This document shows positions 9,992-56,089 of a stretch of DNA of 64,000 nt, piece after piece (the stretch's first letter is position 1; each line of letters starts with the position of its first letter). The position numbers and the translations under genes were made by a program. The DNA lies in NCBI RefSeq assembly GCF_044704955.1, contig NC_091977.1:12462001-12526000 (forward strand), read 5' to 3'. The notes under the pieces were generated by a model that saw nothing but the letters and a program-made list of their open reading frames with translations, searched no databases and was not told the origin of the DNA. The DNA is from Pristiophorus japonicus. Its lineage: Eukaryota.

Positions 9992-10021
9992 GTTAGGTAG
10001 AGGTTGCACTATGCTTTTGCC

Positions 10022-17121: not shown

Positions 17122-17508
17122 AGCTTTCTGTCAGTGGTTGGACAATGACCATCGCGGATACAGTGAGTGCTGAGGAAGGGAGGTCCGCTGTCTTACCGTG
17201 CAGTTTCACCCACCCACCCACTGATCGCCCGCTCACCGGCACTGTGAAATGGTTCAAAGGTCACAAAGGGAAGGTTATTTTTACCTGCACGTATTCTGGT
17301 CTGGGCCATTCACAGATCGAGCTGTGTGAGAATGTGAGACAGCAGGAAGGTGGGAATCGATTCAGATTCGTGGGAAACCTCAGCAATAATGATGTCTCGA
17401 TAATGATGGAATGGCTGAGCCAGGCGGACAATGCTGGTTATCTGTGTCTTGTGAAGCTCAATATTGACAAATTTGGAACATCGTTAGGAACGCGTCTGAG
17501 TGTGAGAG
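17122..17508 (+). CDS. Ig V-set exon V1, Siglec-15-like, paralogue A (phase 1/1, 387 nt)
   Basis: Acceptor ...ctctccacag|, donor AGAG|gtgagg; WTMT..VSAEEG.SAVLPCSFTHP, KWF, extra Cys pair IFTC...ELC, RFRFVGN..NDVSI, D...YLC, GTRLSV. Matches the recalled Siglec-15 V-domain pattern. Confidence 0.88.
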
Positions 17509-18339
17509 GTGAGGAGCACTGCTCAGGGGCTGTCGCTGCTCCGATAGCTCAGTGAGGAAAGGCTCCACCTGGTCTGGTCCTGAGCCACACGGATCAATAA
17601 ACTCTCAGCAACCCCGGGCTATGAAGAGGGAATATTGCCCGGGGTTCCTGCTCCTGATCATTTTCCAGTGACTCCTGCTGGAAGGTGTGTTCTTGGACAT
17701 TGGATGAGACATTGGGCCTGCCTGTGATGCTCTCCACAGTCAAATATTCCATTGACACACATTGACCAGGCTTGTGCTCTAAGGAAGGCCATTTGGGTGA
17801 GGCAGATACACATTAGATACATTTCTTTCAGTTATACTATTTTGGGATACAGTATATGAGTAATTTGATATGGCATTTAATCTAGACAAATGCAGTGTGA
17901 TGCAGGTAGGTAGGATCAATGGTCCTTACCATTTACAGGGAACAACACTGAAAGTGGTTCAGAGAGAAAGGGATCCAGGTTTTATTGTGCACGCATCACT
18001 CAAGGTACAGGAACAATGCAGAGAGCCATAGCCAAAGCAGACAGTGTATTGGGTTGTACTAATAGAACCATTCAATGTAAGTCAAAGGACACCACCTCCC
18101 ACTTTCTGCTAGTCTGAGAAACTTTCCTTACCTCCTATCCTCTATTTTCTGTTTTGTAGCCATCTCTCAATCCGTTCTGCTACCCGGCCCCCTGACCCCA
18201 CATCCCCTGGGACCCTTACTGACTGAGTACTACACTGGGCAATGCCTCTACCCATAGACCACAGGGAGAACTCTGAACTGAAACAAATTAAAGTTCTCAT
18301 CAAAACGCTGATATATTGTGATGTCTGTCCTTTCCTCAG

Positions 18340-18690
18340 CTGCTAGTGGAAATGGCTCAGTGGTGAGAGGGACCAAGGGAGCTTCGGTTACATTGCCCTG
18401 TATGTTCACACCCAGCAACTACACCAACCTGACCACTGTTACATGGATGAGGAAGGAGCCCTACCAACACTTAGTCACATTTAGAGCCCAATCAAATGGG
18501 TCTTGGACAACTGTAAACTGTGGAAATCGGTACGAGCTCATCGGGAACCCAAAGGAGGGAAACGCTTCAACCAGGATAAAGCAGCTGAGTGTGAAAGACA
18601 ACCACACTTACCTGTGTCTGGTGGAGTACAAGCCATGGCTCAATTATTAACGTCTGATCCAGACTGAGACATGTCTGCAGCTCGTACATG
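18340..18690 (+). pseudogene. Ig V-set exon V2, paralogue A, in-frame TAA at 18648-18650
   Basis: Acceptor tttcctcag|, donor CATG|gtaaga, 351 nt; GASVTLPC, VTW, RYELIGNPKEGNAS, D..TYLC; TAA where copy B has CAA. Confidence 0.85.
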
Positions 18691-18771
18691 GTAAGAAACC
18701 ATCCCTATATTCTCCAGTATATAGAGGTTGTACAGTGAGGACGGGCGGTGTAACACAAAACACTCATTTGC

Positions 18772-19330
18772 CGTGGCTCAGTGGGTAGCACTCACCAAGG
18801 TCTTGTTTTCAAATCCCACTCGAGCACATAATCTCGGCTGACTTTCCCAGTGCAGTACTGAGGGAGCACTGCACTGTCAGAGGTGCTGTCTCTCGGATGA
18901 GATGTTAAACCGAGGCCCCGTCTGCCCTCACAGATGGATGTAAAAGATCCCATGGCACTATTTTGAAGAACAGTGATTCTCTCCGGTGTCCTGGCCAATA
19001 CCAATTCCTGAAAAAAGCAAAAATATACAGGATATCTGCTCAGTTATCACTTTGCTATTTGTGAGAGCTTGCTGTGTGCACAAATTGGCCCTGTGATACC
19101 ATACATCACAACAGTGACTGCACTTCAAAAAAGTACTTCATTGGCTGCTTTCTTATTAATTCATGGGATGTGGGCATCGCTGGCAAGATTGGCATTTATT
19201 GCCCATCCCTAATGACCCTCGTAGAAGGTGGCGGTGAGCTGCCTTCTTGAACCGCTGCAGTCCATGCAGTGCTTTGTGAGGGCCTAAGGTTGTGAAAGGT
19301 ACTGTATAAATACAAGCACTTTTTCTTCTT
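18772..19330 (+). mobile_element. DeuSINE (SacSINE1/AmnSINE1-like) containing a minus-strand LINE 3' tail at ~19150-19268
   Basis: tRNA-like head gtggctcagtgggtagc; Deu-domain-like gttaaaccgaggccccgtctgcc...aaagatcccatggcactat; tail ggttgtgaaaggt..tataaa. Family assignment is from recall. Confidence 0.75.
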
Positions 19331-19496
19331 AACTGACCGAATCCATCAGTTCCTGCAAACTGTGCCATTTTGGGGACGTTGGGGCCAAAAATCCCCCTGG
19401 TCTCTATTGAAATACGCAGTGTCTGGGGGTAGTCCTTAATTTAAACATGAAAGGTGGGTGCCTGAAGTACAAGGTGCAAAAATCATGGGCACCCAC

Positions 19497-20088: not shown

Positions 20089-20129
20089 CCCACTAACCGA
20101 AGGAGACTGCGCACATAGTAAACGGGTCG

Positions 20130-21848: not shown

Positions 21849-21904
21849 ATTATTGGTACTCTCCATTTGTCGTTCTTCATTGACAATCCATACTCTTTGC
21901 CTCT

Positions 21905-28549: not shown

Positions 28550-28709
28550 ATAAAGACACTTCCTGTTAGCCTGTTAAATTCAGTGAGACTGATCAACAGT
28601 TTCCACAGATTGCACAAGAAGTGAAGGAACACTTCGAGCAACTTCTGTATTTCGGTGTCAGGAGACAAGAAGCAGCGAAGGAGAAGGACGAAACAGCGGA
28701 GAGCTGGCG
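28550..28709 (+). promoter_or_regulatory. Candidate promoter/5' UTR of paralogue B with an ETS motif
   Basis: CACTTCCTGT at 28557-28566 (reverse complement ACAGGAAGTG, ETS consensus) and AGAAGTGAAGG at ~28617, in apparently non-repeat sequence just upstream of the leader exon. Confidence 0.4.
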
Positions 28710-28770
28710 ATGAATTCTCTCTACGTTTGGCTTCCCACAGTCCTGCTGTCGGTCTCGGTGCAGGGTCGCA
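28710..28770 (+). CDS. Candidate signal-peptide (leader) exon of Siglec-like paralogue B
   Basis: ATG with G at -3; MNSLYVWLPTVLLSVSVQ(GR); two phase-1 donors (G|gtcgca after 28764, A|gtaggt after 28770); both join in frame to V1 LSVSG-WTM, completing a plausible cleavage site. Confidence 0.62.
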
Positions 28771-29590: not shown

Positions 29591-29930
29591 CGTGACCATT
29601 GTATAGCTGGGTAACCAAGGGTGGTGGAGGTATTGGAAGTGGCAGAGGGAGCTGAGAGCTGGTGTAGGCAGCTGTCGGTGTCTGGGAGAAGTGATCATTC
29701 TCTCTCTCTTTATCTCTGAAGGTGCCAGCTGGTCTTTTTTGTCTGCTCATATGTATCACCCCCTGACCTTCTCTGGCAGCCCATCCCATCAAACATTCAA
29801 TTTAAATCTCTTGTCCTTGTCTATAAATCCCTCCATAGCCCTGTAACTCCCTACCTCTGCATAGGGACCGGAGAAGGCCATTCAGCCCCTCGAACCTGTT
29901 CTGCAATTTAATTAGATCATGGCTGATCTG

Positions 29931-31712
29931 TATAGAAACATAGTACATAGGTGTAGGAGTAGGCCCTTCGAGCCTTCACCACCATTCAATAAGATCATGG
30001 CTGATCATTCACCTCAGTACCCCTTCCCTGCTTTCTCTCCATACTCCTTGATCCCTTTAACCGTAAGGGCCATATCTAACTCCCTCTTGAATATATCCAA
30101 TGAACTGGCATCAACAACTCTCTGCGGTAGGGAATTCCACAGGTTAACAACTCTCTAAGTGCAGAAGTTTCTCCTCATCTCAGTCCTAAATGGTTTACCC
30201 CTTATCCTTAGACTGTGTCCTCTGACTCTGGACTTCCCCAACATCGGGAATATTCTTCCTGCATCTAACCAGTCCAATCCCATCAGAATGTTATATGTTT
30301 CTATGAGATCCCCTCTCATCCTTCTAAACTCCAGTGAATACAAGCCCAGTCGATCCAGTCTCTCCTCATACGTCAGTCCAGCCATCCCGGGAATAAATCT
30401 GGTGAACCTTCGCTGCACCCACTCAATAGCAAGCATGTCCTTCCTCAGATTAGGAGACCAAAACTGCACATAATACTCAAGGTGTGGTCTCACCAAGGCC
30501 CTGTACAACTGCAGTAAGACTTCCCTGCTCCTATACTCAAATCCCCTCGCTATGAAGGCCAGCATGCCATTTGCTTTCTTTACTGCCTGCTGTACCTGCA
30601 TGCCTACCTTCAATGACTGATGTACCATGACACCCAGGTCTCTTTGCACCTCCCCTTTTACTAATCTGTCACCATTCAGATAATAGTCTGCCTTCCTGTT
30701 TTTGCCACCAAAGTGGATAGCCTCACATTTATCCACATTATACTGCATCTGCCATGCATTTGTCCATTCACCTAACCTGTCCAAGTCCCCCTGCAGCCTC
30801 GTAACATCCTCCTCGCAGCTCGCACTGCCACCCAACTTAGTGTCATCGGCAAACTTGGAGATATTACCTTCAATTCCTTTGTTCCCGATGTTGGGGAAGT
30901 CCAGAACCAGGGATCACAGTCTAAGGATAAGGGGTAAGCCATTTAGGACCGAGATGAGGAGAAACTTCTTCACCCAGAGAGTGGTGAACCTGTGGAATTC
31001 TCTACCACAGAAAGTTGTTGAGGCCAATTCACTAAATATATTCAAAAAGGAGTTACATGTAGTCCTTACTACTAGGGGGATCAAGGAGTATGGCGAGAAA
31101 GCAGGAATGGGGTACTGAAGTTGCATGTTCAGCCATGAACTCATTGAATGGCGGTGCAGGCTCGAAGGGCCGAATGGGCTACTCCTGCACCTATTTTCTA
31201 TGTTTCTATGTTTCCTACTCTTTGCTTCATGTCTGCCAACCAGTTCTCTATCCATGTTACTATATTACCCCCAATACCATGTGCCTTAATTTTGCACATT
31301 AATATCTTATGTGGGACCTTGTCGAAAGCCTTTTGAATGTCCAAATACACCACATCCACTGGTTCTCCCTTATCCACTATACTAGTTACATCCTCAAAAA
31401 ACTCTAGAAGATTTGTCAAGCATGATTTTCCTTTCATAAATCCATGCTGACTTGGACCGATCCTGTCACTGCTTTCCAGATGCGCTGCTATTACATCTTT
31501 AATAATTGATTCCAGCATTTTCCCCACTACCGATGTCAGGCTGACCGGTCTATAATTTCCTGTTTTCTCTCTCCCTCCTTTTTTAAAAAGTGGGGTTACA
31601 TTAGCTACCCTCCAATCCATAGGAACTGATCCAGAGTCCATGGAATGTTGGAAAATAATCACCAATACATCTACTATTTCTAGGGCCACTTCCTTAAGTA
31701 CTCTGGGATGTA
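29931..31712 (-). mobile_element. CR1 ORF2 fragment (minus) containing a plus-strand CR1 3' piece at ~30879-31212
   Basis: ORFs 30155-30835 and 31198-31712 are CR1 RT; the internal piece ends in a (TTTCTATG)n tail; ~110 bp of RT appears missing at the junction. Confidence 0.85.
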
Positions 31713-32283
31713 ATGGGCAAACACCCATCGGGAGCACACAGGTCCAGTGAGCTACCCAATCCTGTAGCCTGTGTCCCTGGAACCAGAGTGATGCACCACG
31801 GAGTGTGGCCACAAGCAGCTAATATAGACAAGCTGCAGAACAAGCGATCTCAGGAGGGCAATGGCACCGGTATCGATACCCTTACCCTTAACATCTCCAC
31901 CTCTCAGGCACCCGATGGCACCAACCGCCACGAGCCTGAAATGCAAAACGTGCTAAGGCGCAGCTCCCAGACCGCATCGCTACACCCGGGAACGAAGGGT
32001 CACGCGCAACGGTTCTCCCAAATGGGATCGGGACCAGCCAGGATCTCAAACCAAATAAAGCCCAGGCAAGTGAGTCAGCAGTTCCCTGCGCACTGCCAGA
32101 CGACTGCCCCTCAGGGAGGAGCAGCGACCTGGGGCGCAAGGAAAGGACAGGGAGGTCACAGGCATCTGTGAACCTGCCCGACGCTAGGAGCAATGGTAAA
32201 GGCCCCGAGAGCAGGCAACTTGAGCCAACCGGGTTCCCACTGCCAGCACTGGGCACCGCGCCACCACCAGACTACCTGGACAC

Positions 32284-32551
32284 TGTCATGTATCTCACAT
32301 TACTGTATATAACTGTATCTTACCATGCTATACATGACTGTAACTGGATATGACCTGTAACAATAAGCATACCTTACCACCAGGGGTGCACTTGCAGGAG
32401 ACACTCCATACCTGTCCCACTGAGGTATATAAAGGCAGGTCTCAGGCAAGTGCAACACTGGAGAGCTGTAAATTAAAGGTGCAGGTCCTGAGTGACCTTG
32501 ACTTCAGCATGTGTCTCGTGTAAGTCAGTACATTAGAGTCAGGATTTAACA
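32284..32551 (+). mobile_element. Solo LTR, 268 bp, 5-bp TSD GACAC
   Basis: TG...CA; GACAC at 32279-32283 and 32552-32556; TATATAAA and ATTAAA; similar to the LTR at 60485-60743. Confidence 0.9.
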
Positions 32552-34750
32552 GACACCATCCAGCAATTCTGGTATTAGTTTGCCCCGGTGCTGACCCCAG
32601 CACTGACTCCAAGTGTGTATCAAGAATGTACCTCACCAGTCAAAGGTACTTGCCTCACAACTGTACCACAAATGTAATGATATAAATGCACATTTTTTTC
32701 TGGACTTGATAGGGAATGGAAGGCCAGCAGGAAGAGCAGTGCAAGGAATGTAGTGCAGGGGTCCCCTGCGGTCATCCCCCTGCAAAACAGATACACCGCT
32801 TTGAGTACTGTTGAGGGGGATGACTCATCAGGGGAGGGCAGCAGCAGCCAAGTTCATGGCACCGTGGCTGGCTCTGCTGCACAGGAGGGCAGGAAAAAGT
32901 GTGGGAGACCGACAGTGATAGAGGATTCAATTGTAAGGGGAATAGATAGGCGTTTCTGCGACCGCAACCGAGACTCCAGGATGGTATGTTGCCTCACTGG
33001 TGCAAGGGTCAAGGATGTCTCGGAGCGGGTGCAGGACATTCTGAAAAGGGAGGGTGAACAGCCAGTTGTCGTGGTGCACATTGGTGCCAACGAAATAGGT
33101 AAAAAAAGGGATGAGGTCCTACGAGAAGAATTTAGAAGCTAGGAGCTAAATTAAAAAGTAGGACCTCAAAAGTAGTAATCTCGGGATTGCTACCAGTGCC
33201 ACGTGTTAGTCAGAGTAGGAATCGCAGGATAGCTCAGATGAATATGTGGCTTGAGCAGTGGTACAGCAGGGAGGGATTCAAATTCCTGGGGCATTGGAAC
33301 TGGTTCTGGGGGAGGTGGGACCAGTACAAACCGGACGGTCTACACCTGGGCAGGTCCGGAACCAATGCCCTAGTGGGAGTGTTTGCGAGTGCTGTTGGGG
33401 AAGAGTTAAACTTATATGGCAGGGGATGGAAACCAATGCAGGGAGACAGAGGGAAATAAAATGGAGACAGAAGCAAAGGATAGAAAGGAGATGAGTAAAA
33501 GTGGAGGGCAGAGAAACCCAAGGTAAAAAACAAAAAGGGCCACTGTACAGCAAAAGTCTAAAGGGTCAAAGTGTTGAATCATTGTGGGTGGAGATTAGAG
33601 ATAGTAAGGGGAAAAAGTCACTGGTGGGCGTAGTGTATCGGCCCCCAAATAATAACTTCACGGTGGGGCGGGCAATAATCAAGGGAATAATGGAGGCATG
33701 TGAAAAAGGAACGGCAATAGTCATGGGGGATTTTAACCTACATATCGATTGGTCAACTCAAATCGCACGGGGTAGCCTGGAGAAGGAATTCATAGAATGC
33801 ATACGGGATTGTTTCTTAGAACATTATGTTACAGAACCTACAAGGGAGCAAGCTATCTTAGATCTGGTCCTGTGTAATGAGACAGGAAAAATAAACGATC
33901 TCCTAGTAAAAGATCCTCTCGGAATGAGTGATCACAGTATGGTTGAATTTGTAATACAGATTGAGGGTGAGGAAGTTGTGTCAGAAACGAGCGTACTATG
34001 CTTAAACAAAGGGGACTACAGTGGGATGAGGGCAGAGTTGGCTAAAGTAGACTGGAAACACAGACTAAACGGTGGCACAATTGAGGAACAGTGGAGGACT
34101 TTTAAGGAGCTCTTTCATAGTGCGCAACAAAAATATATTCCAGTGAAAAAGAAGGGTGGTAAGAGAAGGGATAAACAGCCGTGGATAACCAAGGAAATAA
34201 AGGAGAGTATCAAATCAAAGACCAATGCGTATAAGGTAGCCAAGGTTAGTGGGAAACTAGAAGATGGGGAAAATTTTAAACAACAGCAAAGAATGATTTA
34301 AAAAGCAATAAAGAAAGGAAAGATAGATTACGAAGGTAAACTTGCGCAAAACATAAAAAACAGATAGTAAAAGCTTTTACCGATATATAAAACCGAAAAG
34401 AGTGACTAAAGTAAATGTTGGTCCCTTCGAAGATGAGAAGGGGGATTTAATAATGGGAAATGTGGAAATGGCTGAGACCTTAAACAATTATTTTGCCTCG
34501 GTCTTCACAGTGGATGACACAGAAACCATGCCAAAAATTGCTGGTCACAGGAATGTGGAAGGGAGGACCTTGAGACAATCACTATCACTAGGGGGGTAGT
34601 GCTGGATAGGCTAATGGGACTCAAGGTAGACAAGTCCCCTGGTCCTGATGAAATGCATCCCAAGGTATTAAAAGAGATGGCGGAAGTTATAGCAGATGCA
34701 TTCGTTATAATCTACCAAAATTCTCTGGACTCTGGATTGGAAAGCCGCTA

Positions 34751-38094: not shown

Positions 38095-39532
38095 TTAATG
38101 TAACGCCTCTGTTTAAAAAAGGGGGCAGACAAAAGGCAGGTAACTATAGGCCGGTTAGTTTAACATCTGTAGTGGGGAAAATGCTTGAAACTATCATTCA
38201 GGAAGAAATAGCGGGACATCTAGATAGGAATAGTGCAATTAAGCAGACGCAGCATGGATTCATGAAGGGGAAATCATGTTTAACTAATTTACTGGAATTC
38301 TTTGAGGATATAACGAGCATGGTGGATAGATGTGTACCGATGGATGTGGTGTATTTAGATTTCCAAAAGGGATTCGATAAAGTGCCACACAAAAGGTTAC
38401 TGCAGAAGATAGAGGTACGCGGAGTCAGAGGAAATGTATTAGCATGGATAGAGAATTGGCTGGCGAACAGAAAGCAGAGAGTTGGGATAAATGGGTCCTT
38501 TTCAGGTTGGAAATCGGTGGTTAGTGGTGTTCCACAGGGATCGGTGCTGGGACCACAACTGTTTACAATATACATAGATGACCTGGAAGAGGGGACAGAG
38601 TGTAGTGTAACAAAATTTGCAGATGACACAAAGATTAGTGGGAAAGCGGGTTGTGTAGAGGACTCAGAGAGGCTGCAAAGAGATTTGGATAGGTTAAGCG
38701 AATGGGCTGAGGTTTGGCAGATGGAATACAATGTCGGAAAGTGTGATGTCATCCACCTTGGGAAAAAAAACAGTAAAAGGGAATATTATTTGAATGGGGA
38801 GAAATTACAACATGCTGAGGTGCAGCGGGACCTAGGGGTCTTTGTGCATGAATCCCATAAAGTTAGTTTGCAGGTGCAGCAGGTAATCAGAAGGCGAATG
38901 GAATGTTAGCCTTCATTGCGAGAGGGATGGAGTACAAAAGCAGGGAGGTCCTGCTGCAACTGTATAGGATATTGGTCAGGCCACACCTGGAGTACTGCGT
39001 GCAGTTTTGGTCACCTTGATCAAGGAAGGATATACTGGCTTTGGAAGGGTTACAGAGACGATTCACTAGGCTGATTCCGGAGATGAGGGGGTTACCTTAT
39101 GATGATAGATTGAGTAGACTGGGTCTTTACTCGTTGGAGTTCAGAAGGATGAGGGGTGATCTTATAGAAACATTTAAAATAATGAAAGGGATAGACAAGA
39201 TAGAGGCGGAAAGGTTGTTTCCACTGGTCGGGGAGACTAGAACTAGGGGGCACAGCCTCAAAATACGGGGGAGCCAATTTAAAACCGAGTTGAGAAGGAA
39301 TTTCTTCTCCCAGAGGGTTGTGAATCCGTGGAATTCTCTGTCCAAGGAAGCAGTTGAGGCGAGCTCATTGAATGTATTCAAGTCACAGATAGATAGATTT
39401 TTAACCAATAAGGGAATTACGGGTTACGGGGAGCGGGCGGGTAAGTGGATCAGCCATGGTCTTATTGAATGGCGGAGCAGGCTCGAGGGGCTAGATGGCC
39501 TACTCCTGTTCCTAATACTTATGTTCTTATGT

Positions 39533-42500
39533 AATAACAAGGCCAGCATGAAAGCTGAATGCGAGGTGTATTCGGAACCCAGGAGAGGGCTCTGAGCTAG
39601 TTAGAGTGGGTGAGAGCTCAGATGAACAGGACCCCAAGAAAGAATTCAAAAGGCAGGAGGTAACAGAGCAGAGTAGCACTGGGGTAAGTGTAAACCACAA
39701 GGTGATAGGAAGGGACAATATGTATGAATATAAAAGGGCTGTAGGAGGGGTCAAAACTAAAAATCATGCTTTAAAAACTAGTAATAAAACACTCTACCTG
39801 AACGCACGCAGCATTTGAAATAAAGTAAATGAGTTGATGGCACAAATCATTACAAATGGGTATGATTTGGTGGCCATTACAGAAATGTGGTTGCAGGGTG
39901 GCCAAGACTGGGAATTAAACATACAGGGGTATCTTACAATTTGGAAAGATAGACAAGAAGGGAAAGGAGGTGGGGTAGTTCTGTTGATAAAGGATGCTAT
40001 CAGGACAGTTGTGAGAGATGATATTGGCTCTAATGAACCAAATGTTGAATCATTGTGGGTGGAGATTGAAGATAGTAAGGGGAAAAAGTCACTGGTGGGC
40101 GTAGTTTATAGGCCTCCAAATAATAACTTCACGGTGGGGCGGACAATAATCAAGGAAATAATGGAGGCATGTGAAAAAGGAACGGCAGTAATCATGGGGG
40201 ATTTTAACCTACATATTGATTGGTCAAATCAAATCACATGGGGTAGCCTTGAGGAGGAATTCATAGAATGCATACGGGATTGTTTCTTAGAACAGTATGT
40301 TACAGAACCTACAAGGGAGCAAGCTATCTTAGATCTGGTCTGGTGTAATGAGGCAGGAATAATAAACGATCCCCTAGTAAAAGATCCTCTCGGAATGAGT
40401 GATCAACAGGAGTGGTTTTATTTATAATACAGATTGAGGGTGAGGAAGTAGTGTCTCAAACAAGCTTACTATGCTTAAACAAAGGGGACTACAGTGAGAT
40501 GAGGGCAAAGTTCGCTGAAGTAGACTGGAAACACAGACTAAACGGTGGCACAATTGAGGAACAGTGGAGGACTTTTAAGGAGCTCTTTCAAAGTGTGCTC
40601 AAAAATATATTCCAGTGAAAAAGAAGGGCGGTAAGAGAAGGGATAACCAGCCATGGATAACCAAGGAAATAAAGGAGAGTATCAAATTAAAAACCAATGC
40701 GTATAAGGTGGCCAAGGTTAGTGGGAAACTAGAAGATTGTGAAAATTTTAAACGACAGCAAAGAATGACTCAGAAAGCAATAAAGAAAGGAAAGGTAGAT
40801 TACGAAAGTAAACTTGCGCAAAACATAAAAACAGATAGTAAAAGCTTTTACCGATATATAAAACGGAAAAGAGTGACTAAAGTAAATGTTGGTCCCTTAG
40901 AAGATGAGAAGGAGGATTTAATAATGGGAAATGTGGAAATGGCTGAGACCTTAAACGATTATTTTGCTTCGATCTTCACAGTGTAAGACACAAAAACCAT
41001 GCCAAAAATTGCTGGCCAGGGAATGTGGGAAGGGAGGATCTTGAGATAATCACGATCACTAGGGGGGTAGTGCTGGACATGCTAATGGGACTCAAGGTGG
41101 CCAAGTCCCCTGGTCCTGATGAAATGTATCCCAGGGTATTAAAAGAGATGGCGGAAGTTATAGCAGATGCATTCGTTATAATCTACCAAAATTCTCTGGA
41201 CTCTGGGGAGGTACCAGCGGATTGGAAAGCAGCTAATGTAACGCTTCTGTTTAAAAAGGGGGGCAGACAAAAGGCAGGTAACTATAGGCCAGTTAGTTTA
41301 ACATCTATAGTGAGGAAAATGCTTGAAGCTATCATTAAGGAAGAAATAGCGGGACATCTAGATAGGAATAGTGCAATCAAGCAGATGCAACATGGATTCA
41401 TGAAGGGGAAATCATGTTTAACTAATTTACTGGAATTCTTTGAGGATGGTGGATAGAGGTGTACCGATGGATGTGGTGTATTTAGATTTCCAAAAAGCAT
41501 TCGATAAGGTGCCACACAAAAGGTTACTGCAGAAGATAAAGGTACGCGGAGTCAGAGGAAATGTATTAGCATGGATAGAGAATTGGCTGGCTAACAGAAA
41601 GCAGAGAGTTGGGATAAATGGGTCCTTTTCGGTTTGGAAATTGGTGGTTAGTGGTGTGCCACAGGGATCGGTGCTGGGACCACAACTGTTTACAATATAC
41701 ATAGATGACCTGGAAGAGGGTACAGAGTGTAATGTAACAAAATTTGCAGATGACACAAAGATTAGTGGGAAAGCGGGTTGTGTAGAGGACACAGAGAGGC
41801 TGCAAGGAGATTTAGATAGGTTAAGCGAATGGGCTAAGTTTTGGCAGATGGAATACAATGTTGGAAAATGTGAGGTCATCCACCTTGGAAAAAAAAACAG
41901 TAAAAGGGAATATTATTTGAATGGGGAGAAATTACAACATGCTGCGGTGCAGAGGGACCTGGGGGTCCTTGTGCATGAATCCCAAAAAGTTAGTTTGCAG
42001 GTGCAGCAGGTAATCAGGAAGGCGAATGGAATATTGACCTTCATTGCGAGAGGGATGGAGTACAAAAGCAGGGAGGTCCTGCTGCAACTGTATAGGGTAT
42101 TGGTGAGGCCGCAGCTGGAGGACTGCATGCAGTTTTGGTCACCTCACTTAAGGAAGGATATACTAGCTTTGGAGGGGGTAAAGAGACGATTCACTAGGCT
42201 GATTCTGGAAATGAGAGGGTTACCTTATGATGATAGATTGAGTAGACTGGGTCTTTACTCGTTGGCGTTCAAAAGGATGAGGGGTGATCTTATAGAAATA
42301 TTTAAAATAATGAAAGGGATAGACAAGATGGATGCAGAGAGGTTGTTTCCACTGGTCGGGGAGACTAGAACTAGGGGGCACAGCCTCAAAATACGGGGGA
42401 GCCAATTTAATGCCGAGTTGAGAAGGAATTTCTTCTCCCAGAGGGTTGTGAATCTGTGGAATTCTCTGCCCAAGGAAGCAGTTGAGGCTAGCTCATTGAA

Positions 42501-42692
42501 TGTATTCAAGTCACAGATAGATAGATTTTTAACCAATAAGGGAATTAAGGGTTACGGGGAGCGGGCAGGTAAGTGGAGCTGAGTCCACGGCCAGATCAGA
42601 CATGATCTTGTTGAATGGTGGAGCAGGCTCGAGGGGGTAGATGACCTACTCCTGTTCCTAATTCTTATGTTCTTATGTTATGTTCTTATGTA
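39533..42692 (+). mobile_element. CR1 LINE, full ORF2 span with stops and frameshifts, head-to-tail with the previous copy
   Basis: LYLNARS through GERAGKWS*; (TTCTTATG)n tail. Confidence 0.92.
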
Positions 42693-43147
42693 TATGAATG
42701 TAAGGAGCCACCAGCATAATCTATATGTGGGGGCAGAGAATGGAGTGGTCATGGACTCACAAACAGAAACCACCAGCACCTCTACTCCCAACAAAACACC
42801 ACCAACTCATCCAAGATGGAAACGACCCTCCAAGGGTCAACCAGATAGAACTAAGCCCAGAGCACTGTCAATGCATGAAGGCGATTTGCACTAAGGACTA
42901 GGGGGAGAGTGATGTCACGTATCACGCATGTTTACTGCTTTTACTATTACATATGATGTGCCACCAGAGGGCACTGCAGTGGGAGACTTGTAGGTTACCT
43001 GTACAGGTGTGCCTGGCCTAGTATAAAAGGCAGGCCACCAGGTGTGGTCCTCACTCTGGAGTTATATTAAATGGACTCAGTTTACTAAAGTTCAAGTGCA
43101 ATACATCGCCTCGTGGAGTCATTATCAGAGCATCCAAAGACATAACA
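42693..43147 (+). mobile_element. 3' end of an LTR element (internal stub, PPT, LTR 42913-43147)
   Basis: PPT agggggagag, then TG...CA with TATAAAA and ATTAAA; the stub resembles 59475-59610. Confidence 0.7.
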
Positions 43148-47126: not shown

Positions 47127-47287
47127 TTGATATCGCTCGCGGTAATGCCCATTTTCAAAAATGGAAACTAGGTGTTTTGAGAATGGGTGAGAAGCCGGCG
47201 ATCAGAAAACCCTTTTTTATCGCCCATGCCGGAAATAACGCCCATTTTTGTGCGATAAGCACAAAAGTGGTGGTTCTAGCCCACAGA

Positions 47288-48120
47288 TTTATTTTTCCAT
47301 CCTTACAAGTCAAACTTAACCACTGGTTTTCTGTTTGAAGAAGATACCTTCCCTCTCGAACAGAACTTTCCAAACTTGTTGTCGAACGTAGACTCATTCT
47401 AGGCTGAGCCTGAGGAGAGTTTTTCTCCAATGGCAGCCCTTGATCTACATTTGAACTCTCTACAACTTCAGATGGTTTGTCTACCTGACTCGGACTTGGA
47501 TTTAAATTCTGACTTTCTCTTGGAATTGTTTCTCGTACATCTGATGTAGGATTTGCTACTGATACTCTTCTTGTAACAAGACAATCTGAATCATCAGAAA
47601 TAATCGAATCATTCCAACTTTCAACTCCTTCCACATCTGTAGTTGATCAATGTGAACAAACCTAACCTTTCCATGATCAAACATCTTGACCAAATATGTG
47701 GGAGGGCCACATATCTTCACTACTCTTCCTGGTAACCACTTTAACCATTTATGGTGATGGTTCTTCACTCTAACCTTCTGATTCAATTTCACACTTCTCT
47801 CTCTTACTCTAGCTCTATCATGATTATCTTTCTGTCTTAATTGTTTCTCTTCTACTGACTGTGCTGAGTTTGGCTTTAACAATGAGAACCTGCTTCGTGG
47901 CTGTCATTTGAGAAACAACTCTGCTGGTTTTCTACCAGTAGTTATATGAGGAGTATTATGATAAGTAATCAGAAAATTAGCCAATGTGTGGTCCAATGAC
48001 AACTGCCATTTCTTTGGATTTGGACACAACATTTGCTTGATGAGGGCACGTTTTGCAATTTGTCCTATGCACTCTGCTGCACCATTTGAAGCAGGGTGGT
48101 ATGGTGGAACTTTGGTATGT
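47288..48120 (-). mobile_element. Gypsy integrase C-terminal fragment
   Basis: PYHPASNGAAE, YHNTPH.TTG..PAEL, KW.PG.VVK..GP.TY; homologous to 2598-2946. Confidence 0.85.
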
Positions 48121-48445
48121 AAGCGTATGGAGGGAGTCATGGGAGTGCCTGGGTGCAGCTGTGCACCTTTGTGCCGTGCTTGTCAGTGTGCTGCAAAATA
48201 CTGACAACATAACTGTCAAAATGATTGTGAAAATGGTCCTTTAAGGAAACTGTCTGATGACATGTCATCAAATAACGTCATCAAACCCGCTTTTTTTTAA
48301 TTGGCCAGGAACCTCGCAGGCCCCAATAAGCCTCATCAACGTAAAATTATTTTTAGAGAGTGGGAAGGAGCTGGAAGTGGGGTCCCAATCGACCACCTAT
48401 TTCGCCACACTGAGCCCGCCTCGGTAGGTGAAATCACGGCTTAGG

Positions 48446-49812
48446 TTCAAGATTGGGTAAGGCCCATTTTAACGGGATGAGACAGAGACTGTCCACAGTA
48501 AACTGGGAAAATCTGTTAACGGATAAAATGACAGAAGACCAGTGGGGGATGGTCCAAAAAGAATTTAAGATGATACAGAACCAGTTTATACCCCTGAGGG
48601 GCAAGAACTGTACTTGCCCAAAAAACAGCCATTGACGACTAAAGAGGACAGCATAAAACTAAAAGAAAAAGCGTACAACAATGCAAAGTAGCAAAGTAGA
48701 TGCTGGCAAATGGGAAAGATACAAAGAACAGCAAAGGGTCACAAAACAGATAGTAAGAGCTACAACAACGGAATACGAGAAGAAACTTGTAAGGGAAATC
48801 TAAATCAACACAAAGAATTTTTACAATTACATTAGGAAAAAGAGGGCAGTCAGGAGCAATGTTGGCCCCATAAAAACTGAAAGTGGTGATACTGTCAATG
48901 ATGAGGAAATGGTGGACATGTTGAATAATTACTTTGTGTCAGTATTTACAGCAGAAGAGGATGATAGCATGCCAGAAATCTCAAGTGAACTAATATTGAA
49001 TCAGGGATAGGGATTCAATAAAATTAACGGTAAGTAAAATAACAGTAATGAAGAAAATAATGGCACTGAGGAGTGACAAATCCCCAGGGCCAGATGGTTT
49101 CCATCCCAGGGTTTAAAATAAGTCAGTGAGCACATTGCAGATGCCCTAACTTTAATCCTCCAAAGTTCTCTCGATTCAGGAACTGTTCCTTTAGATTGGA
49201 AAATTGCGTACGTCACTCTGCTAATTAAGAATGGTAAGAGAGGAAAACCGGGGAATTATAGACCAGTTGGCCTAACATCTGATGTCGTGAAATTGCTAGG
49301 GTCTATAATTAAGTATAGGCTGACTGATCACCTCAAAAATTTTTAATTGACCAGAGAGATTTATCAGAATAAAACCCAGACTTCAAGGGTTAAGTTACGA
49401 GGAGAGATTACACAAATTATGGTTGTATTCTCGAATTTAGAAGGTAGACTGGTTTCATCAAAGTTTTCAAGATATTAAGGCGAACAGATAGGGTAGATAG
49501 AGAGAAACTATTTCCGCTGGTTGAGGATTCTAGGATTAGCGGGTGTAGACTAGAAATTAGAGCCAGACCTTTCAGGAATGAAATTAGGAAACACTTCGAC
49601 ACTCAAAGGGTGGTAAAAGTTTGGAACACTGTTCCGCTAATGACAATTGATGCTAGATCAATTGTTAATTTTAAATCGGATTTTGTTCGCTTTTTATTAA
49701 GGGATATGGACCAAAGGCCAATATATGGAGTTCGGTCACAGATCAACCATGATCTCAAAAAATGGCGGAACAGGCTCGACGGGCTCAATGGCCTGTTCCT
49801 ATATTCTATGTA
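48446..49812 (+). mobile_element. CR1 fragment with ~0.8 kb internal deletion (homologue of 2947-4355)
   Basis: ~49232-49340 matches ~2947-3055 and ~49357-49812 matches ~3878-4355. Confidence 0.85.
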
Positions 49813-50095
49813 TAAACCAGCGAAACCCCTTGACTAGATTCCAACCTTTAGCTCACTCCCAGGTATCCATTATTCTATATATAAAACATCTGAACCCCTC
49901 GATTAGAATCCAGTTTGTAACTTAATCCCAGGTATGCATGATTTTATATATAAACCATGCAAACCCCTCAATTAGATTCCAGCCTACAACTCACTCCCAG
50001 TTATCCATTATTCCATACAGAAATCACCTGAACCCCTCGATTAGATTCCAGCCTGTAACTCCCTCCACAGTGTCTGATGTCCATATATAAACTAT
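49813..50095. repeat. ~65-bp tandem repeat, copy B
   Basis: Same unit as 4356-4635. Confidence 0.85.
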
Positions 50096-51684
50096 CCCAA
50101 TCTGCCCATGTGATGTTATATCTGTTGTCACTATATAACAAGGGGGCAAAATTCATTTGGGGCGCTAAGTATTATCTTTTTGAACATTTAGCGCCTTGCA
50201 AGGTGGGTTGCAAAATTGTGGAAAATTGGGCACTTTCATCTTAAAATGAAGGGAGACAGTATCTGAGGCGCTTATGGCCTCAGTGGGGCACTGCAGGGGT
50301 GCTATTAACAGAGAGCTGCACCCAATTTCAGATGATTTTCATTCAGTGATAATCAGCCTCCTGCTCATTCCAGTTCTTAAAGGGGATGTCGTTTCAGGCA
50401 GCACCTGGTCATTTTCATCATTGCTGGAGTTCAAAGAGAGCTGGAAGGAAGTTCTGCGATGGCTGCTCCAATGCCTCTTAGATGAGCCACATGGGTCAAT
50501 GACCTGGGATTGGAGACATTGGTGGGGGCAGTAAAGAGAATGACAAATGCTCTGTTCCCTCTAGCTGGGAGAAGGCAGGTTTTTAGGCCCATGTGTGCAG
50601 AGAAGGCTGCAGAGGTGTCGGTCAGTGCCGTGGTCGACAGAAGCCCAACACCGTGCCGGAAGAAATTCAACGATATGATTCGGGTGGTCAAGGTGAGTAC
50701 ATGTTTACACAATTCTTACATTCCAACCTGAGCCTCAGTCTGTGCACACACTGCGAACCAGCACTTAACCCAGCAGGCAACCACCAACCATCTGTACCTA
50801 CCCACAGTCACATCCTCATTTCACTCCTTGCCTACGTTCTATTTAACCATGGCTGGCATATCTTCTACATACATAACTAGACACTTACTCACACAGATTC
50901 CTTTCTTTTGCAGGCCAAGATGGCACACAACAGAAGGGAGCAGCAGCAGACTGGAGGAGAGAAGCTGAACTGCACCAGCTGACTGACTTGGAGGAGCGAG
51001 TGCTGCGGCTTATTGGCCCGCTGGGTGTGGGCACTGTGGCTGGCGGAGACATCGAGCTCCCTGGGGGCAACAATGGTATCTTTATCCCCTCTTCTTATCT
51101 CACTTTCCTGTTACACCAGAAGGCCTTATCACTTTCCAGCTCCTCATACTGTCTGCCTTCCTTGCTCCATTCCTGCCCCCCTGCCCTCACCTTAATGCGA
51201 CTCTTGTGCCATTTATGTTTTCAGATAACCACGCAGCAAATGAGCAGTCTGTTCCTGAGCCCCCCCCCTAACTGAGTCACGAGCGAGAAGAGGGGGACGA
51301 GGATGAGGATGAGGAGCCAAGCACCGTATCACTGCTTCTCTCACCCACAGGCACTAGCTCAGATACTGGCATTACACGGTCCTTAGAGGTTAGGTTAGTA
51401 GAGGGGTCTGCACTGGGTGATGCTCCGGGGCCTAGCCGGCTGCAGCATAGTGAAAGGGAAAGGGAATCTCGGGAGCCATTTCCCCGGAGGGCAAGTTTGT
51501 ACATGAGTTCTTTGACACCGGACTCAGATGAGGACCTCGATGGAGAGGCGTTCACACAAAAGGTGATGACCATGCACTCCAACATAATAGGTGCAATGGG
51601 AAGGCCCGAGAGCCTGTCGGAAGTGGTAAGGAGCATTGTACATACCTCTGCGCACACCATGGAGCTCATCATTGCCAGTGTGCA

Positions 51685-52149
51685 TCATCATCATCATCAT
51701 AGGCAGTCCCTTGAATCGAGGATGACTTGTTTCCACTGCAAAAAGTTCACAGGCGTTTCAATGAAGGACCTAAAATTCCAGCTCCGAACTCAATCTTGAA
51801 GGGCGGAAGATGCCTGTTCTTGAATTTTTTTAACATGTGGGGACATTTGCACACCAGCCACCACACAGGCTTGACAGAGCTAGGTTTTGGCCTAGTAGCA
51901 AGGAGTAACCAAGACGACTGAAGACCAACTCTGCAACCCGGATCTAGCGCGCACACATATCGCAGTGTGGGCTGGCCCGTGCTGCCCCTGGGCCCTCGCC
52001 TCTTCTGGGCCCCGAACTCATGCCTCCCCTGGGTCCCGATATCGTCCCTCTACAATCTCTCGCTGTTCCTTCGCCCCGACCTCGTCGCTCCTGTAGTATC
52101 TGCCCACGCTCCAATCACAGACCTGGACCTTGATGACATCCCTTTTCAC
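51685..52149 (-). mobile_element. Short retroposon with (TGA)n tail (probably RTE-mobilised), only in copy B
   Basis: (CAT)n then aggcagtcc...aatcgagg; TSD TGCCAGTGTGCA / TGCCGGTGTGCA at 51673-51684 and 52150-52161; empty site at ~6270. Confidence 0.8.
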
Positions 52150-52979
52150 TGCCGGTGTGCAGACAATGGTGGACTCCCAGAGAGACCGCACAGATCCAGA
52201 CCTCATGATGTCATGGGCGATGTGGCAGCTTCCATTGCAGAACAGGCGGAAGCAACGCAACGTCTTGGTGCTGCATAGAGTCGATGGTTGCTTGCATGGT
52301 AGCTTAGACTGCTATCGTGCAGTCTCAACTTGATGCCACACAATGTCTTGGTGCTGTCTTTCAGTCTCAGCTGCATGTCTCGCAAGCTCTGACTGCTGCC
52401 ATCGTCACTGGGTCCATCACAGTCAACCGGGGATCTCAGTGTCACAGCAGCCCAGCAATCTGTCCTGCAGCAGATTGGTGGGGATGCTGAGGTGCTGGCC
52501 CGGGTGATTGGCAGTGGGTCAGTGGAGCAGGAACCTGCTGTCCTCTCTCAGGTTGACAGCATTCCTGATCCCACCACTGCCACTCCACCATTGCCCTTGT
52601 CGCTGCCTGTCACCCAGCCAGCCCAGACAGCCGCCGCCCAGCCTGAGGTGTTGCAGTCTGCATCCGGGCCTTCCAGGCCCAGAGCTGGTCGAGGGCGTCC
52701 TGCAAGGCCATCTGTAGTCTCTTGCCATGCTGCTGCCACAGGGGACACTCTGCGAAGGAGTATTAGGATAGGTCAACAAAAGAGGGGATATAAGGAAATG
52801 CACAAGGGTGATGAATAATACACATTTATACATTTTATTGTTGTTTGATAAATGTTGATTGGAATGTTTAATGTTTGCTGTTGTCTCTCATTTCCATCTT
52901 CTGGTTTTGTAAGGAAGCGCAAAGTGATGTGGTGATGGGGACATCCAGAGGAACCGGGAAGTAGGATGGAAGTCAGTGG

Positions 52980-53925
52980 AAACGACCTCCCTTGCAGGAT
53001 TGTAATGGAGTCGCTGCCTCCTCCTTCACGGCTGTTGCTGCTCCTCCTCGTCCTCCTGCTGTTGCTCCTCCACCTGCTCCTCCTGGTCCTCCTCCTCCTC
53101 CTCCTGAGGTGGTGCTGCTATGCCTGGCGGCAATGGCTGTGCCCTCATGATGGCCAGGTTGTGCATGATGCAGCAGACAACGATGAATCGGGACACAGGC
53201 GAATACTGCAGGACTCCTCCCAAGCGGTGAAGGCAGTGGAAACGATGTTCCTGGTGGCAGCATGGCTCTCATTGTATGAGTGCTGGGCAGGAGTGGTGGG
53301 GTTGTGGAGGGGAGTGATGAACCAGGTGGATAGCGGGCTCATTTTGGGGCTGGAACAGAGCTGGCACAAAATGAAGGTGTCGTGGTTGCTGCCAGGATAG
53401 CGGGTATTGACGCTGACTATTCTGCATGTATGGTCGCACAGCAACTGCACATTCAGAAGCGTTGGCCTTTGCAATTATGGAAGATCTCAGGATTGCGATG
53501 CGGTGCCCTCAAAGCGACGTGCAGTCGATGGCACCCTGCACCATGGGGAGGCCCACTATCTTGGCAAAGCCCTGCATCATGGGGAAGGAAATGTAATCCC
53601 TCCTCCTTCTGTGCAGAGCATCTGTGACCTCGCGAATGGAGCAATGGACGGCAACTTGGGAGAGTTGGAGATGTCCCCTGTTGCACACTGGAACGATCCA
53701 TTGCTGTAGAAATTGACCTTGACTGCCACAGAGAGCTGTCCTTAGCCTGGTCTGAGACCCGAGGTCTGGTTGCAGCAGATGACAGAGCTCTGTGACCACG
53801 TCCTTGCAGAAACGCAGCCTTTACACACACTGCTCCTCAGTGAAATCGATATAGAACTGCTGCCGGAATACCCGGGGAGAGTAAGGCCTCCTGTTGCCAG
53901 CCCTCTGGTGCCTTCTTCCTCTGAT
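52980..53925 (-). pseudogene. Harbinger DDE transposase, copy B, multiple deletions
   Basis: PMVQGAIDC, NVQLLCDH, YPGSNHD, CCIMHNLA. Confidence 0.82.
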
Positions 53926-54446
53926 GAAACGACAGAAATGCTTTAACTTCAAAGCTGCTGTGAGTTATTCAGGGGAAAGGTTAGGAGGCAGGAGACTCTT
54001 TGAGGTAAACATCGCTGCTATGGGTCCAACAGCCACTCTGCCTAACTGTTGGAAAACAGAAAAAAGTAATGGCCGACAGAAAATAGTTTTCAAGATGGTG
54101 CCTTTAAATAGCGCTGCTCCATCCCGTTCCCGACTGCGACTAGACAGCTGAAGCTATCATTGTCATCGCCAGATGCTAAGGTAGGTTGCTCGGGGCAATT
54201 TAACTTCCGGGGCGGTAAGGGGACGATGACATCATCATCGCCGTGCTGCCTCGTAGCGCCTCCGCAAAACCCCCCGCCCAATTTCGCGGGGCCGATTTTT
54301 GTGCCGCGACCGGGCGAAAACCATTTCCCAGTGATAAAAGGGGCAATTTCACCCTCTCAGTATAGTGTCTCGTACCCGTAGTATGTTTTCCAAACACTGA
54401 GTCTGCCCCCGTGCTGTGTTAATGTTGTCTCGCTCTCTCTCCACAG

Positions 54447-54839
54447 AGCTTTCTGTCAGTGGTTGGACAATGACCACCGCGGATACAGTGAGTGCTGAGG
54501 AAGGGAGGTCCACTGTCTTGCCGTGCAGTTTCACCCACCCACCCACTGATCGCCCGCTCACCGGCACTGTGAAATGGTTCAAAGTGCACTCACCATTTAA
54601 CAGGGTTATTTTTAACTGCACATATTCTGGTCTGGGCCATTCACAGGGCGAGCTGTGTGAGAATATGAGACCGCAGGAAGGTGGGAATCGATTCAGATTC
54701 ATGGGGAACTTCAGGAACAACGATGTCTCGATAATGATGGAGCGGCTGAGCCAGGCGGACAATGGTCGTTATTGGTGTGGTGTGGAGCTCAATATTGACA
54801 ACTTTCAAGCATCGATAGGAACGCGTCTGAGTGTGAGAG
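54447..54839 (+). CDS. Ig V-set exon V1, Siglec-15-like, paralogue B (phase 1/1, 393 nt, open)
   Basis: ccacag| acceptor and AGAG|gtgagg donor; VLPCSFTHP, KWF, IFNC...ELC, RFRFMGNFRNNDVSIMMERL..AD..RYWCGVE, GTRLSV. Confidence 0.9.
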
Positions 54840-55676
54840 GTGAGGAGCACTGCTCAGGGGCTGTCGCTGCTCCGATAGCTCAGTGAGGAAAGGCTCCACC
54901 TGGTCTGGTCCTGAGCCACACGGATCAATAAACTCTCAGCAGCCCCAGGCTATGAAGAGGGAATATTGCGCGGGGTTCCTGTTCCTGCTCATTTTCTAGT
55001 GACTCCTGCTGGAAGGTGTGTTCTTGGACATTGGATGAGACATTGGGTCTGCCTGTGATGCTCTCCACAGTCAAATATTCCATTGACACACATTGACCAG
55101 GCTTGTGCTCTAAGGAAGGCCATTTGGGTGAGGCAAACACAAATTAGATAGCTTTCTTTCAGTAATACTATTTTGAGATACAGTATATGAGCAATTTGAT
55201 ACGGCATTTAACCTCGACTAATGCAGTGTGATGCAGGTAGGTAGTATCAACACAAAGTACACTTATCATTTACAGGGAACAACACTGAAAGTGGTTCAGA
55301 GAGAAAGGGATCCAGGTTTTATTGTGCACACATCACTCAAGGTACAGGAACAATGCAGAGAGCCATAGCCAAAGCAGACAGGGTATTGGGTTGTATTAAT
55401 AGAACCATTCAATGTAAGTCAAAGGACACCACCTCCCACTTTCTGCTAGTCTGAGAAACTTTCCTTACCTCCTATCCTCTGTTTTCTGTTTTGTAGCCAT
55501 CTCTCAATCCGTTCTGCTACCCGGTCCCCTGACCCCACATTCTCTGGGACCCTTACTGGCTGAGTACTACACTGGGCAATGCCTCTACCCATAGACCACA
55601 GGGAGAGCTCTGAACTGAAACAAATTAAAGTTCTCATCAAGATGCTGATATATTGTGATGTCTGTCCTTTCCTCAG

Positions 55677-56027
55677 CTGCTAGTGGAAATGGCTCAGTGG
55701 TGAGAGGGACCAAGGGAGCTTCGGTTACATTGCCCTGTCTGTTCACACCCAGCGACCCCACCAACCTGACCACTGTTACATGGATGAGGAAGGAGCCCTA
55801 CCAACACGTAGTCACATTTAGAGCCCAATCAAATGGATCTTGGACAACTGTAAACGGTGGAAATCGGTACGAGCTCATCGGGAACCCAAAGGAGGGAAAC
55901 GCTTCAACCAGGATAAAGCAGCTGAGCGTGAAGGACAACCACACTTACCTGTGTCTGGTGGAGTACAAGCCACGGCTCAATTATCAATATCTGATCCAGA
56001 CTGAGACATGTCTGCAGCTCGTACATG
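55677..56027 (+). CDS. Ig V-set exon V2, paralogue B (phase 1/1, 351 nt, open)
   Basis: cctcag| acceptor and CATG|gtaaga donor; B-strand Cys, C-strand Trp, D-x-x-x-Y-x-C; five N-x-S/T sequons. Confidence 0.88.
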
Positions 56028-56089
56028 GTAAGAAACCATCCCTATATTCTCCAGTATATAGAGGTTGTACAGTGAGAAAACATTCATCA

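Follow-up and report, generated by a model that had tools for sequence, protein, structure and literature searches.

Siglec-15 is regarded as a conserved single gene, stable from fish to humans, whose product combines a V-C2 ectodomain with a DAP12-coupled lysine in the transmembrane (TM) segment, and it has become a target for drugs against cancer and bone disease. Here we analyse 64 kb of the genome of the sawshark Pristiophorus japonicus (assembly GCF_044704955.1, contig NC_091977.1, positions 12,462,001–12,526,000 of the forward strand), a stretch free of N runs that is referred to below as the window and in whose coordinates all positions are given. On its plus strand, as for all receptor exons described here, lie two units, each composed of two consecutive V-set exons, V1 and V2 (V1a and V2a in copy 1, V1b and V2b in copy 2). 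These are very probably the 5′ parts of two tandem, recent duplicates belonging to a family of type I membrane receptors of sharks and rays that derives from Siglec-15.

The first domain of this family has in common with Siglec-15 (human Q6ZMC9; structure 7ZOZ) a four-cysteine V domain (pairs B–F and C′–C″) and the motifs GW.M, AVLPC.FTHP and RFR..GN..ND.S, and the activating members carry the TM lysine motif PLG(I/V)KLL of Siglec-15. The family differs from Siglec-15 in its V-set second domain, its many copies, the existence of members with an immunoreceptor tyrosine-based inhibitory motif (ITIM) and, in the window, Leu or Gly at the position of R143. Gene models with a V-V-C2 ectodomain, named ‘Siglec-15/12’, have the same order of a V1-type followed by a V2-type domain, but they keep a third, C2 domain and have uncharged TM segments and long Tyr-rich tails.

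Among mammalian receptors, the CD33-related Siglecs (Siglec-5/14, Siglec-11/16 and the Arg-mutated Siglec-XII) are likewise clustered and fast-evolving, with paired ITIM and DAP12-type members of similar ectodomain; gene conversion, recurrent loss of the essential Arg and pseudogenes are described for them, including Arg-less Siglecs of primates (PMC6288428). The shark family differs from these in apparently stemming from the Siglec-15 branch, and hence in having an independent origin, in its canonical B–F disulfide and in its V-V as opposed to V-C2(n) ectodomain. Multigene immunoglobulin-superfamily receptors with charged-TM and ITIM forms in early-branching vertebrates also include the skate MDIRs and the teleost NITRs, the domains of the skate MDIRs being CD300/TREM/pIgR-like and occurring in activating and inhibitory forms (PMC3031540). 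No protein named MDIR or from Raja eglanteria is among the 90 relatives of the skate family member Leucoraja P0012, and identity of the present family with the MDIRs is not supported by that search.

Two V1–V2 units and a leader exon

All four V exons have polypyrimidine-AG acceptors and donors of the form TGAGAG/gtgagg (V1) or TACATG/gtaaga (V2; the slash marks the exon end), and their translations match the Pfam V-set model with E values from 1.7e-11 to 3.4e-15 (Table 1). A first-pass annotation of the window had described two same-strand V1–V2 paralogues about 37 kb apart, each with consecutive phase-1/1 V-set exons separated by an intron of about 830 bp. Closer measurement agrees: V1a and V1b lie 37,325 bp apart on the two arms of a segmental duplication, and the introns span 831 bp in copy 1 and 837 bp in copy 2. 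Agreement of this kind goes far past what chance would produce. Overlooked at that stage, and added here, was an in-frame stop codon, TAA, in V2a. Beyond V1a, V2a, V1b and V2b, no further V-like exon was found in the window.

Located between the two units is the leader exon of copy 2, whose open reading frame (ORF; 28710–28766) is identical at 19 of 19 residues to the signal peptide of the P. japonicus gene model P0221 and 68–79% identical to those of other family members (tblastn). Searches were run exon by exon, and only single junction codons were translated across splice sites. The predicted codon joining the leader to V1b (A+AG, Lys) matches the sequence ...QGYK-LSVSGW... of P0221, and that joining V1 to V2 (G+CT, Ala) matches ...SVR-A-ASGNG... 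in P. japonicus gene models including P0221. Because the predicted junction codons reproduce those of P0221, which is the best available support for this connection, V1 is predicted to be spliced to V2. The window holds the 5′ halves of genes only.

The 5′ untranslated region (5′UTR) of the leader exon is 75% similar, in conceptual translation, to the N-terminal extension of the Heterodontus (horn shark) model P0216, in a frame different from that of the ATG at 28710; the extension of P0216 probably reflects an error of annotation or else an upstream ORF. About 1 kb past the leader (29.7–29.9 kb), weak tblastn signals (E 0.2–1.3) were considered as a relic of V1 and, with all frames read, were rejected as chance matches.

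Both domains are V-set

Closest to V1a among proteins of the PDB is human Siglec-15 (7zoz; phmmer E 2.1e-15), followed by CD33 (E 6.4e-6). The alignment with Siglec-15 spans GW.M, VSAE.G..AVLPC.FTHP and RFR..GN..ND.S, and all four Siglec-15 cysteines (C64/C142 and C95/C104) are aligned in V1. In Siglec-15 these form the disulfide C64–C142 and an extra disulfide, C95–C104, between strands C′ and C″ (PMC10264397); the V1b cysteines C26, C57, C70 and C110 show little or no variation across 30 family sequences. In Foldseek, the V1b structure predicted by AlphaFold2 (predicted local distance difference test (pLDDT) score of 82) has Siglec-15 as its top match (E 5.7e-11, template-modelling score (TM-score) of 0.82, root mean square deviation of 2.3 Å and 36% identity with 7zoz), with Siglec-7 and sialoadhesin as the next matches. 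A specifically Siglec-15-like V1 is supported by its sequence and by its predicted fold.

The second extracellular domain of Siglec-15 is C2-set. In its place, V2a and V2b match the Pfam V-set model (E ~4e-15), and the AlphaFold2 model of V2b (pLDDT 88) matches V-set structures. The nearness of V2 to Siglec-15 or to the TIM proteins was judged from PDB, Foldseek and BLASTP comparisons. The PDB matches of V2 are split between Siglec-15 (E 8.8e-9) and TIM-2 (E 9.9e-9), and Foldseek places TIM-3 (E 8.5e-8) next to Siglec-15 (E 1.1e-7), the latter with the best TM-score, 0.82. Bird Siglec-15 aligns with V2 of Heterodontus P0210 at 31% identity (BLASTP E 4e-17), over a region including W.(R/I)KEPY and (K/R)Y.L.GNP. 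A domain-restricted search for relatives of V2, limited by its word index, yielded family members only. The identity between V1 and V2 themselves is about 31%. These comparisons fit a true V-set domain of Siglec-15 type, which would have originated by an old internal duplication of a V exon.

The domain assignments of the first-pass annotation fare well on this evidence. Its reading of the ectodomain as V-V and not V-C2 is borne out by the Pfam matches and the V2b model; the motif VSAE.G..AVLPC.FTHP, the extra cysteine pair and RFR..GN..ND.S, which it saw echoed in V1, are present in HMMER alignments to human Siglec-15; and the W..EPY and RY.L.GNP motifs that it reported in V2 also appear in HMMER alignments, the identity of 31% to bird Siglec-15 fitting the internal V duplication that it proposed. 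Among solved proteins, V1 is nearest to Siglec-15, in phmmer and in Foldseek alike.

A receptor family of sharks and rays

Searching 1.84 billion representative proteins with V1b gave 72 matches at E ≤ 1e-10, headed by RefSeq models from sharks and rays. The family comprises at least 87 distinct gene models from more than 20 species of sharks (among them Heterodontus, Mustelus, Heptranchias, Chiloscyllium, Hemiscyllium, Stegostoma, Scyliorhinus, Rhincodon, Carcharodon, Cetorhinus and Pristiophorus) and rays (Narcine, Leucoraja, Amblyraja, Rhinoraja, Mobula, Hypanus, Hemitrygon and Pristis), which have been given automatic names as diverse as uncharacterized, Siglec-15, -12 and -10, sialoadhesin-like, CD33-like, pIgR-like, JAML, A33-like and HAVCR1-like.

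Common to these models is a plan of signal peptide (M.SLY..L..VLLSVSV.G), V1, V2 and TM segment, with C-terminal regions of two forms: one a long tail with CTYA motifs and a C-terminal ITIM (ENV(T/I)YAAV), the other a TM segment of the type IPLG(V/L)K(L/T)L..LVM followed by a short tail. V1-only isoforms and multi-cassette V1–V2 models are also present. To bird Siglec-15, V1 of Heterodontus P0210 is 38% identical (BLASTP E 2e-24), and the TM segments of the two proteins also align (IPLGVKLLALIVM in P0210 versus VPLGIKLLILLVM in the bird protein; BLASTP E 1e-4). In the tree described below, ITIM and Lys-TM members of one species pair as sisters among the V1 domains and again among the V2 domains (Heterodontus P0196/P0210; S. 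torazame P0197/P0212). Judged by these features, this is a paired activating and inhibitory receptor family. Siglec-15 is single-copy; here two copies occur within 64 kb, with three further paralogues in P. japonicus, and family members number dozens of paralogues per genome, with at least 10 loci on one Hemiscyllium chromosome.

The many models across sharks and rays agree with the initial suggestion of an expanding family of innate receptors in cartilaginous fish. Its description as lineage-specific does not hold, the family spanning sharks and rays and related V-V-C2 genes reaching the chimaera Callorhinchus. The accompanying suggestion that the family might be undescribed stands in part: a literature search found no published description of a V-V Siglec-15-like family in sharks or rays, but public RefSeq and UniRef gene models exist, some of them automatically named Siglec-15. 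The window adds two partial members and is not the discovery of the family itself.

Relation to V-V-C2 proteins

Tetrapod, coelacanth and bird Siglec-15 proteins are V-C2. In cartilaginous fish, V-V-C2 proteins are found in Heptranchias (P0026), Pristis (P0264), Mobula (P0049) and the chimaera Callorhinchus (P0032), with a third domain that resembles the C2 domain of Siglec-15 in the two proteins checked, P0026 and P0264. Against V1b and V2b queries, the V domains of the V-V-C2 proteins score 37–62 bits, whereas matches to family members exceed 100 bits.

In a maximum-likelihood tree of 81 V domains (quick search, unrooted, no outgroup), the V1 domains of the family form a clade with a support of 99 in the SH-like approximate likelihood-ratio test (SH-aLRT), with domain 1 of the V-V-C2 proteins as its weakly supported neighbour (76), and the V2 domains form another (SH-aLRT 99), grouped with domain 2 of the V-V-C2 proteins (87); bony-vertebrate Siglec-15 V domains fall between the V1-side and V2-side groups. 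As V1 and V2 group with domains 1 and 2 of the V-V-C2 proteins, which reach the chimaera, the V1/V2 pair is older than the V-V-TM family, which most simply would have arisen from a V-V-C2 ancestor by loss of the C2 domain.

Non-amniote bony vertebrates have Siglec-15-like models with repeated V1-type domains (P0001, P0016, P0018 and P0019/P0020): gar, salamanders and a lungfish ‘Siglec-15’ model have two each, and a further lungfish protein has seven. Because the repeats cluster in the tree within the species (gar and lungfish) or within the group (salamanders), they look like separate, more recent internal duplications. The tail of the caecilian ‘Siglec-15’ P0267 (CTYADI...VTYAAV) is similar to the ITIM tails of sharks.

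The sialic-acid arginine and receptor subtype

In Siglec-15, R143 directly follows C142 and forms a salt bridge to sialic acid, and the R143A substitution abolishes binding (PMC10264397; PMC7226832). Neither copy in the window has Arg at the equivalent position, which is Leu (CTT) in V1a and Gly (GGT) in V1b, each codon being one step from CGT. The model P0221 also has Gly, and V1a, V1b and P0221 form an unresolved trio in the tree; independent loss of the Arg in the two window copies is possible. With the Arg replaced by Leu or Gly, V1a and V1b should both lack canonical sialic-acid binding.

Within the family, the Arg is kept in 68 of 87 distinct V1 domains, more often in one form than in the other: it is present in 23 of the 24 domains from ITIM-tailed members and in 15 of the 25 from Lys-TM members (Fisher p 0.0046, a value that is indicative only, as the sequences are related). 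The C-terminus of P0221, ...SRTDPPQEAEKPNVQTAV, matches the tail found after the Lys-TM exon of Heterodontus P0210. Since P0221 has an activating-type tail and loss of the Arg concentrates in activating members, we infer that the window copies, copy 2 at least, are probably of the activating subtype.

Divergence and fate of the two copies

The proteins closest to the window exons are three P. japonicus models, of which P0221 stands out, its V1 having an identity of 93% with V1a and of 86% with V1b (over the aligned columns of the tree) and its V2 one of 92% with both V2a and V2b. From arm to arm, nucleotide identity is 95.5% in the V1–V2 intron, 96.3% in the V2 exon and 95.3% in the downstream flank, and falls to 90.4% in the V1 exon. 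This exon has 37 differences in 387 sites and the intron 37 in 831 (Fisher p 7.6e-4), a divergence about 2.2 times faster for the exon. Rates of nonsynonymous (dN) and synonymous (dS) substitution estimated by the Nei–Gojobori method are 0.105 and 0.096 for V1, and 0.035 and 0.038 for V2; with dN/dS near 1 and few sites, selection is indistinguishable from relaxation.

About a dozen changes are specific to V1b, including a two-codon insertion, and they cluster in the C–C′, C″ and F–G regions, which make up the ligand face of Siglec-15. V1b shares V46, S48, G71 and N123 with the paralogue P0207; these residues and the raised dS of V1 suggest that exchange between paralogues shaped V1b. Unique to V1a are changes at conserved family positions (R to W in MERL and E to K in VEL), as expected of a decaying copy. 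Owing to the TAA in V2a and the lack of 3′ exons before the next leader exon, copy 1 is most likely to be a pseudogene or a partial duplicate. Copy 2, with its leader, V1b and V2b intact, looks like a live gene.

Segmental duplication and mobile elements

Each of the two arms of the segmental duplication carries one V1–V2 unit, and the arms are about 90–96% identical in nucleotide sequence (self-BLASTN). Much of the remaining sequence is repetitive. Fragments of long interspersed nuclear elements (LINEs) make up most of the 25.7-kb intron between the leader and V1b, as well as the insertion that splits arm 1, and many of the LINE ORFs form inverted or direct repeats among themselves. An element of long terminal repeat (LTR) type begins 0.7 kb downstream of V2b, inside the presumed intron between V2 and the TM exon. 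A 69-bp minisatellite of 3.4–3.8 copies is present in both arms. Near the start of the window, a low-complexity, C/T-rich tandem array with periods of 24–89 bp gives rise to long spurious ORFs in three frames and to a strong negative GC skew.

Two CTG-rich stretches, each about 1.4 kb upstream of a V1 exon, read as a poly-Leu, ‘TM-like’ ORF and are the source of false tblastn matches to TM segments; they were considered as TM exons and rejected because of this position upstream of V1.

Table 1. Features of the 64-kb window, in window coordinates
Feature	Position	Strand	Description
V1a exon	17122–17508 (387 nt)	+	Siglec-15-type V-set, open frame, phase 1/1, Pfam V-set E 1.7e-11
V1a codon after F-strand Cys	17448–17450	+	CTT (Leu), at Siglec-15 R143 position
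V2a exon	18340–18690 (351 nt)	+	V-set with nonsense codon, phase 1/1
V2a in-frame TAA	18648–18650	+	G-strand region; CAA in copy 2 at 55985–55987
Copy 2 leader exon	28621–28770	+	5′UTR 28621–28704, ATG 28710, 20-codon signal peptide, phase-1 donor A/GTAGGT
V1b exon	54447–54839 (393 nt)	+	Siglec-15-type V-set, intact, phase 1/1, Pfam V-set E 4.8e-13
V1b codon after F-strand Cys	54779–54781	+	GGT (Gly), at Siglec-15 R143 position
V1b–V2b intron	54840–55676 (837 bp)	+	95.5% identical to copy 1 intron
V2b exon	55677–56027 (351 nt)	+	Second V-set, intact, phase 1/1, Pfam V-set E 3.4e-15
Duplication arm 1	2599–19430	+	Self-BLASTN; split by LINE insertions at ~6.6–15.1 kb
Duplication arm 2	47289–56760	+	Self-BLASTN
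C/T-rich array	1500–2230		Low-complexity tandem array
69-bp minisatellite	4374–4606 and 49802–50066		One in each arm
LINE fragments near arm 1	6640–7355, 10004–11527, 12106–15063		
LINE fragments in leader–V1b intron	29900–42700		
LINE endonuclease ORFs	10004–11527 and 33501–34298		
LINE reverse-transcriptase ORF	35948–37852	-	
LINE reverse-transcriptase ORF	37848–38906	+	
LINE reverse-transcriptase ORF	41440–42579	+	
CTG-rich stretches	15584–15694 and 53002–53106		Poly-Leu reading; rejected as TM exons
LTR-type retroelement	56760–63418		
LTR element gag-like ORF	56946–57233		
LTR element aspartyl protease ORF	57624–58409		
LTR element reverse transcriptase–RNase H ORF	62627–63415		

Weighing the explanations

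By homology with the family, a complete receptor would run from signal peptide through V1 and V2 to a TM segment. V1, as the membrane-distal and presumably ligand-binding domain, would have the canonical B–F disulfide and the extra C′–C″ disulfide, and V2 would be an older duplicate of the same V type. Inhibitory forms would have a long tail ending in an ITIM (V-x-Y-A-A-V), and activating forms a Siglec-15-like TM lysine (IPLGVKLL) and a short tail, presumably pairing with a DAP12-like adaptor. The 3′ exons of copy 2 would lie beyond the window end, and copy 1 would at best be the source of a V1-only isoform. Tandem duplication, exchange between paralogues, fast change of the V1 ligand face and decay of copies would together account for the evolution of the family.

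Several observations weigh against this account. No credible TM or cytoplasmic-tail exon was found in the 64-kb window for either copy, either by tblastn searches whose queries were the tails of 15 relatives of both the inhibitory and the activating form or by six-frame regular-expression searches for TYA, ITIM and TM motifs, and these searches matched only low-complexity, Leu-rich sequence upstream of the V1 exons; for copy 2, this is unsurprising, as the window ends 8 kb past V2b and the LTR retroelement fills that space. With dN/dS at about 1 in both exon pairs, copy 2 could also be decaying, and at three positions that hardly vary in the family V1b has another residue (A22T, Q75P and V85M). 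No protein identical to the window exons was flagged in the protein collections searched, and copy 2 may be unannotated.

The same observations are what a stretch of dead relics would offer, with decaying V exons in transposon-rich sequence and no functional gene: dN/dS near 1 in both exon pairs, Arg lost in both copies, a stop codon in V2a, nearly invariant residues changed in V1b, LINE and LTR elements making up most of the window and reaching to within 0.7 kb of V2b, and no identical database protein. We nevertheless consider it unlikely that both copies are dead, as copy 2 retains an undamaged leader exon carrying an ATG and a good donor, two open V exons with four canonical splice sites and a V2b 92% identical to annotated paralogues. 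The same Gly occurs in the annotated model P0221, and neutrality of just one partner, or diversifying selection on V1, would also bring dN/dS close to 1. Very improbable is a single gene with a V1-V2-V1-V2 ectodomain, like the ‘pIgR-like’ models of 540–654 amino acids in other sharks. Such a gene has precedents in P0002 (V1-V2-V1-V2) and P0191–P0195 (two to three V2 domains), splicing of V2a to V1b is feasible with all V exons in phase 1/1, and no 3′ exons follow V2a; however, the TAA in V2a would terminate the protein, the cassettes have between them a first exon of the family type, complete with ATG and 5′UTR, and the roughly 36 kb from one cassette to the other consist mostly of transposon sequence.

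Slightly less credible still is the possibility that the copies are the true, single SIGLEC15 orthologue or its alleles, for which Siglec-15 as the best match of V1, the automatic naming of several family members as Siglec-15 by NCBI and the Siglec-15-like Lys-TM kept in activating members could be cited. Against it are the dozens of paralogues per genome, including those on the Hemiscyllium chromosome, the V-set rather than C2 second domain, the ITIM forms, the missing Arg of the window copies and the separate V-V-C2 genes that keep a Siglec-15-type C2 domain in the same species. To a different V-set family, either CD300/pIgR/TREM-like as in the skate MDIRs or TIM, with a superficial likeness to Siglec-15, we assign the smallest probability of all. 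V2 does match TIM-2 and TIM-3 about as well as Siglec-15, some models are automatically named pIgR-like, HAVCR1-like or JAML, and activating and inhibitory forms are described for the MDIRs (PMC3031540). The E value of V1 for Siglec-15 is, however, nine orders of magnitude better than for the next solved protein; V1 has the Siglec-15-specific C′–C″ disulfide pair, the TM lysine motif is common to the family and Siglec-15, and none of the 90 relatives of the skate protein Leucoraja P0012 comes from Raja eglanteria or is named MDIR. Tandem, recent duplicates of the shark-and-ray receptor family, copy 2 apparently live and copy 1 decaying, are the reading that we retain.

Significance of the family

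More tentatively, and with the balance of our judgement still slightly short of acceptance, we propose that sharks and rays turned a single-copy Siglec-15 into their main fast-evolving paired family, in which activating members have repeatedly discarded the Arg, and that the window captures this process in progress. If this is true, the family would parallel the CD33-related Siglecs of mammals while having arisen independently of them. The inconsistent database names hide a single family, which deserves one name. That the V domain and the TM motif of Siglec-15 have multiplied in sharks and rays, giving dozens of genes of the activating and inhibitory kinds, suggests that the Siglec-15 branch once changed as readily as that of the CD33-related Siglecs, and would provide a second, independent case in which to ask why paired receptors arise and why their activating members lose the sialic-acid-binding Arg.

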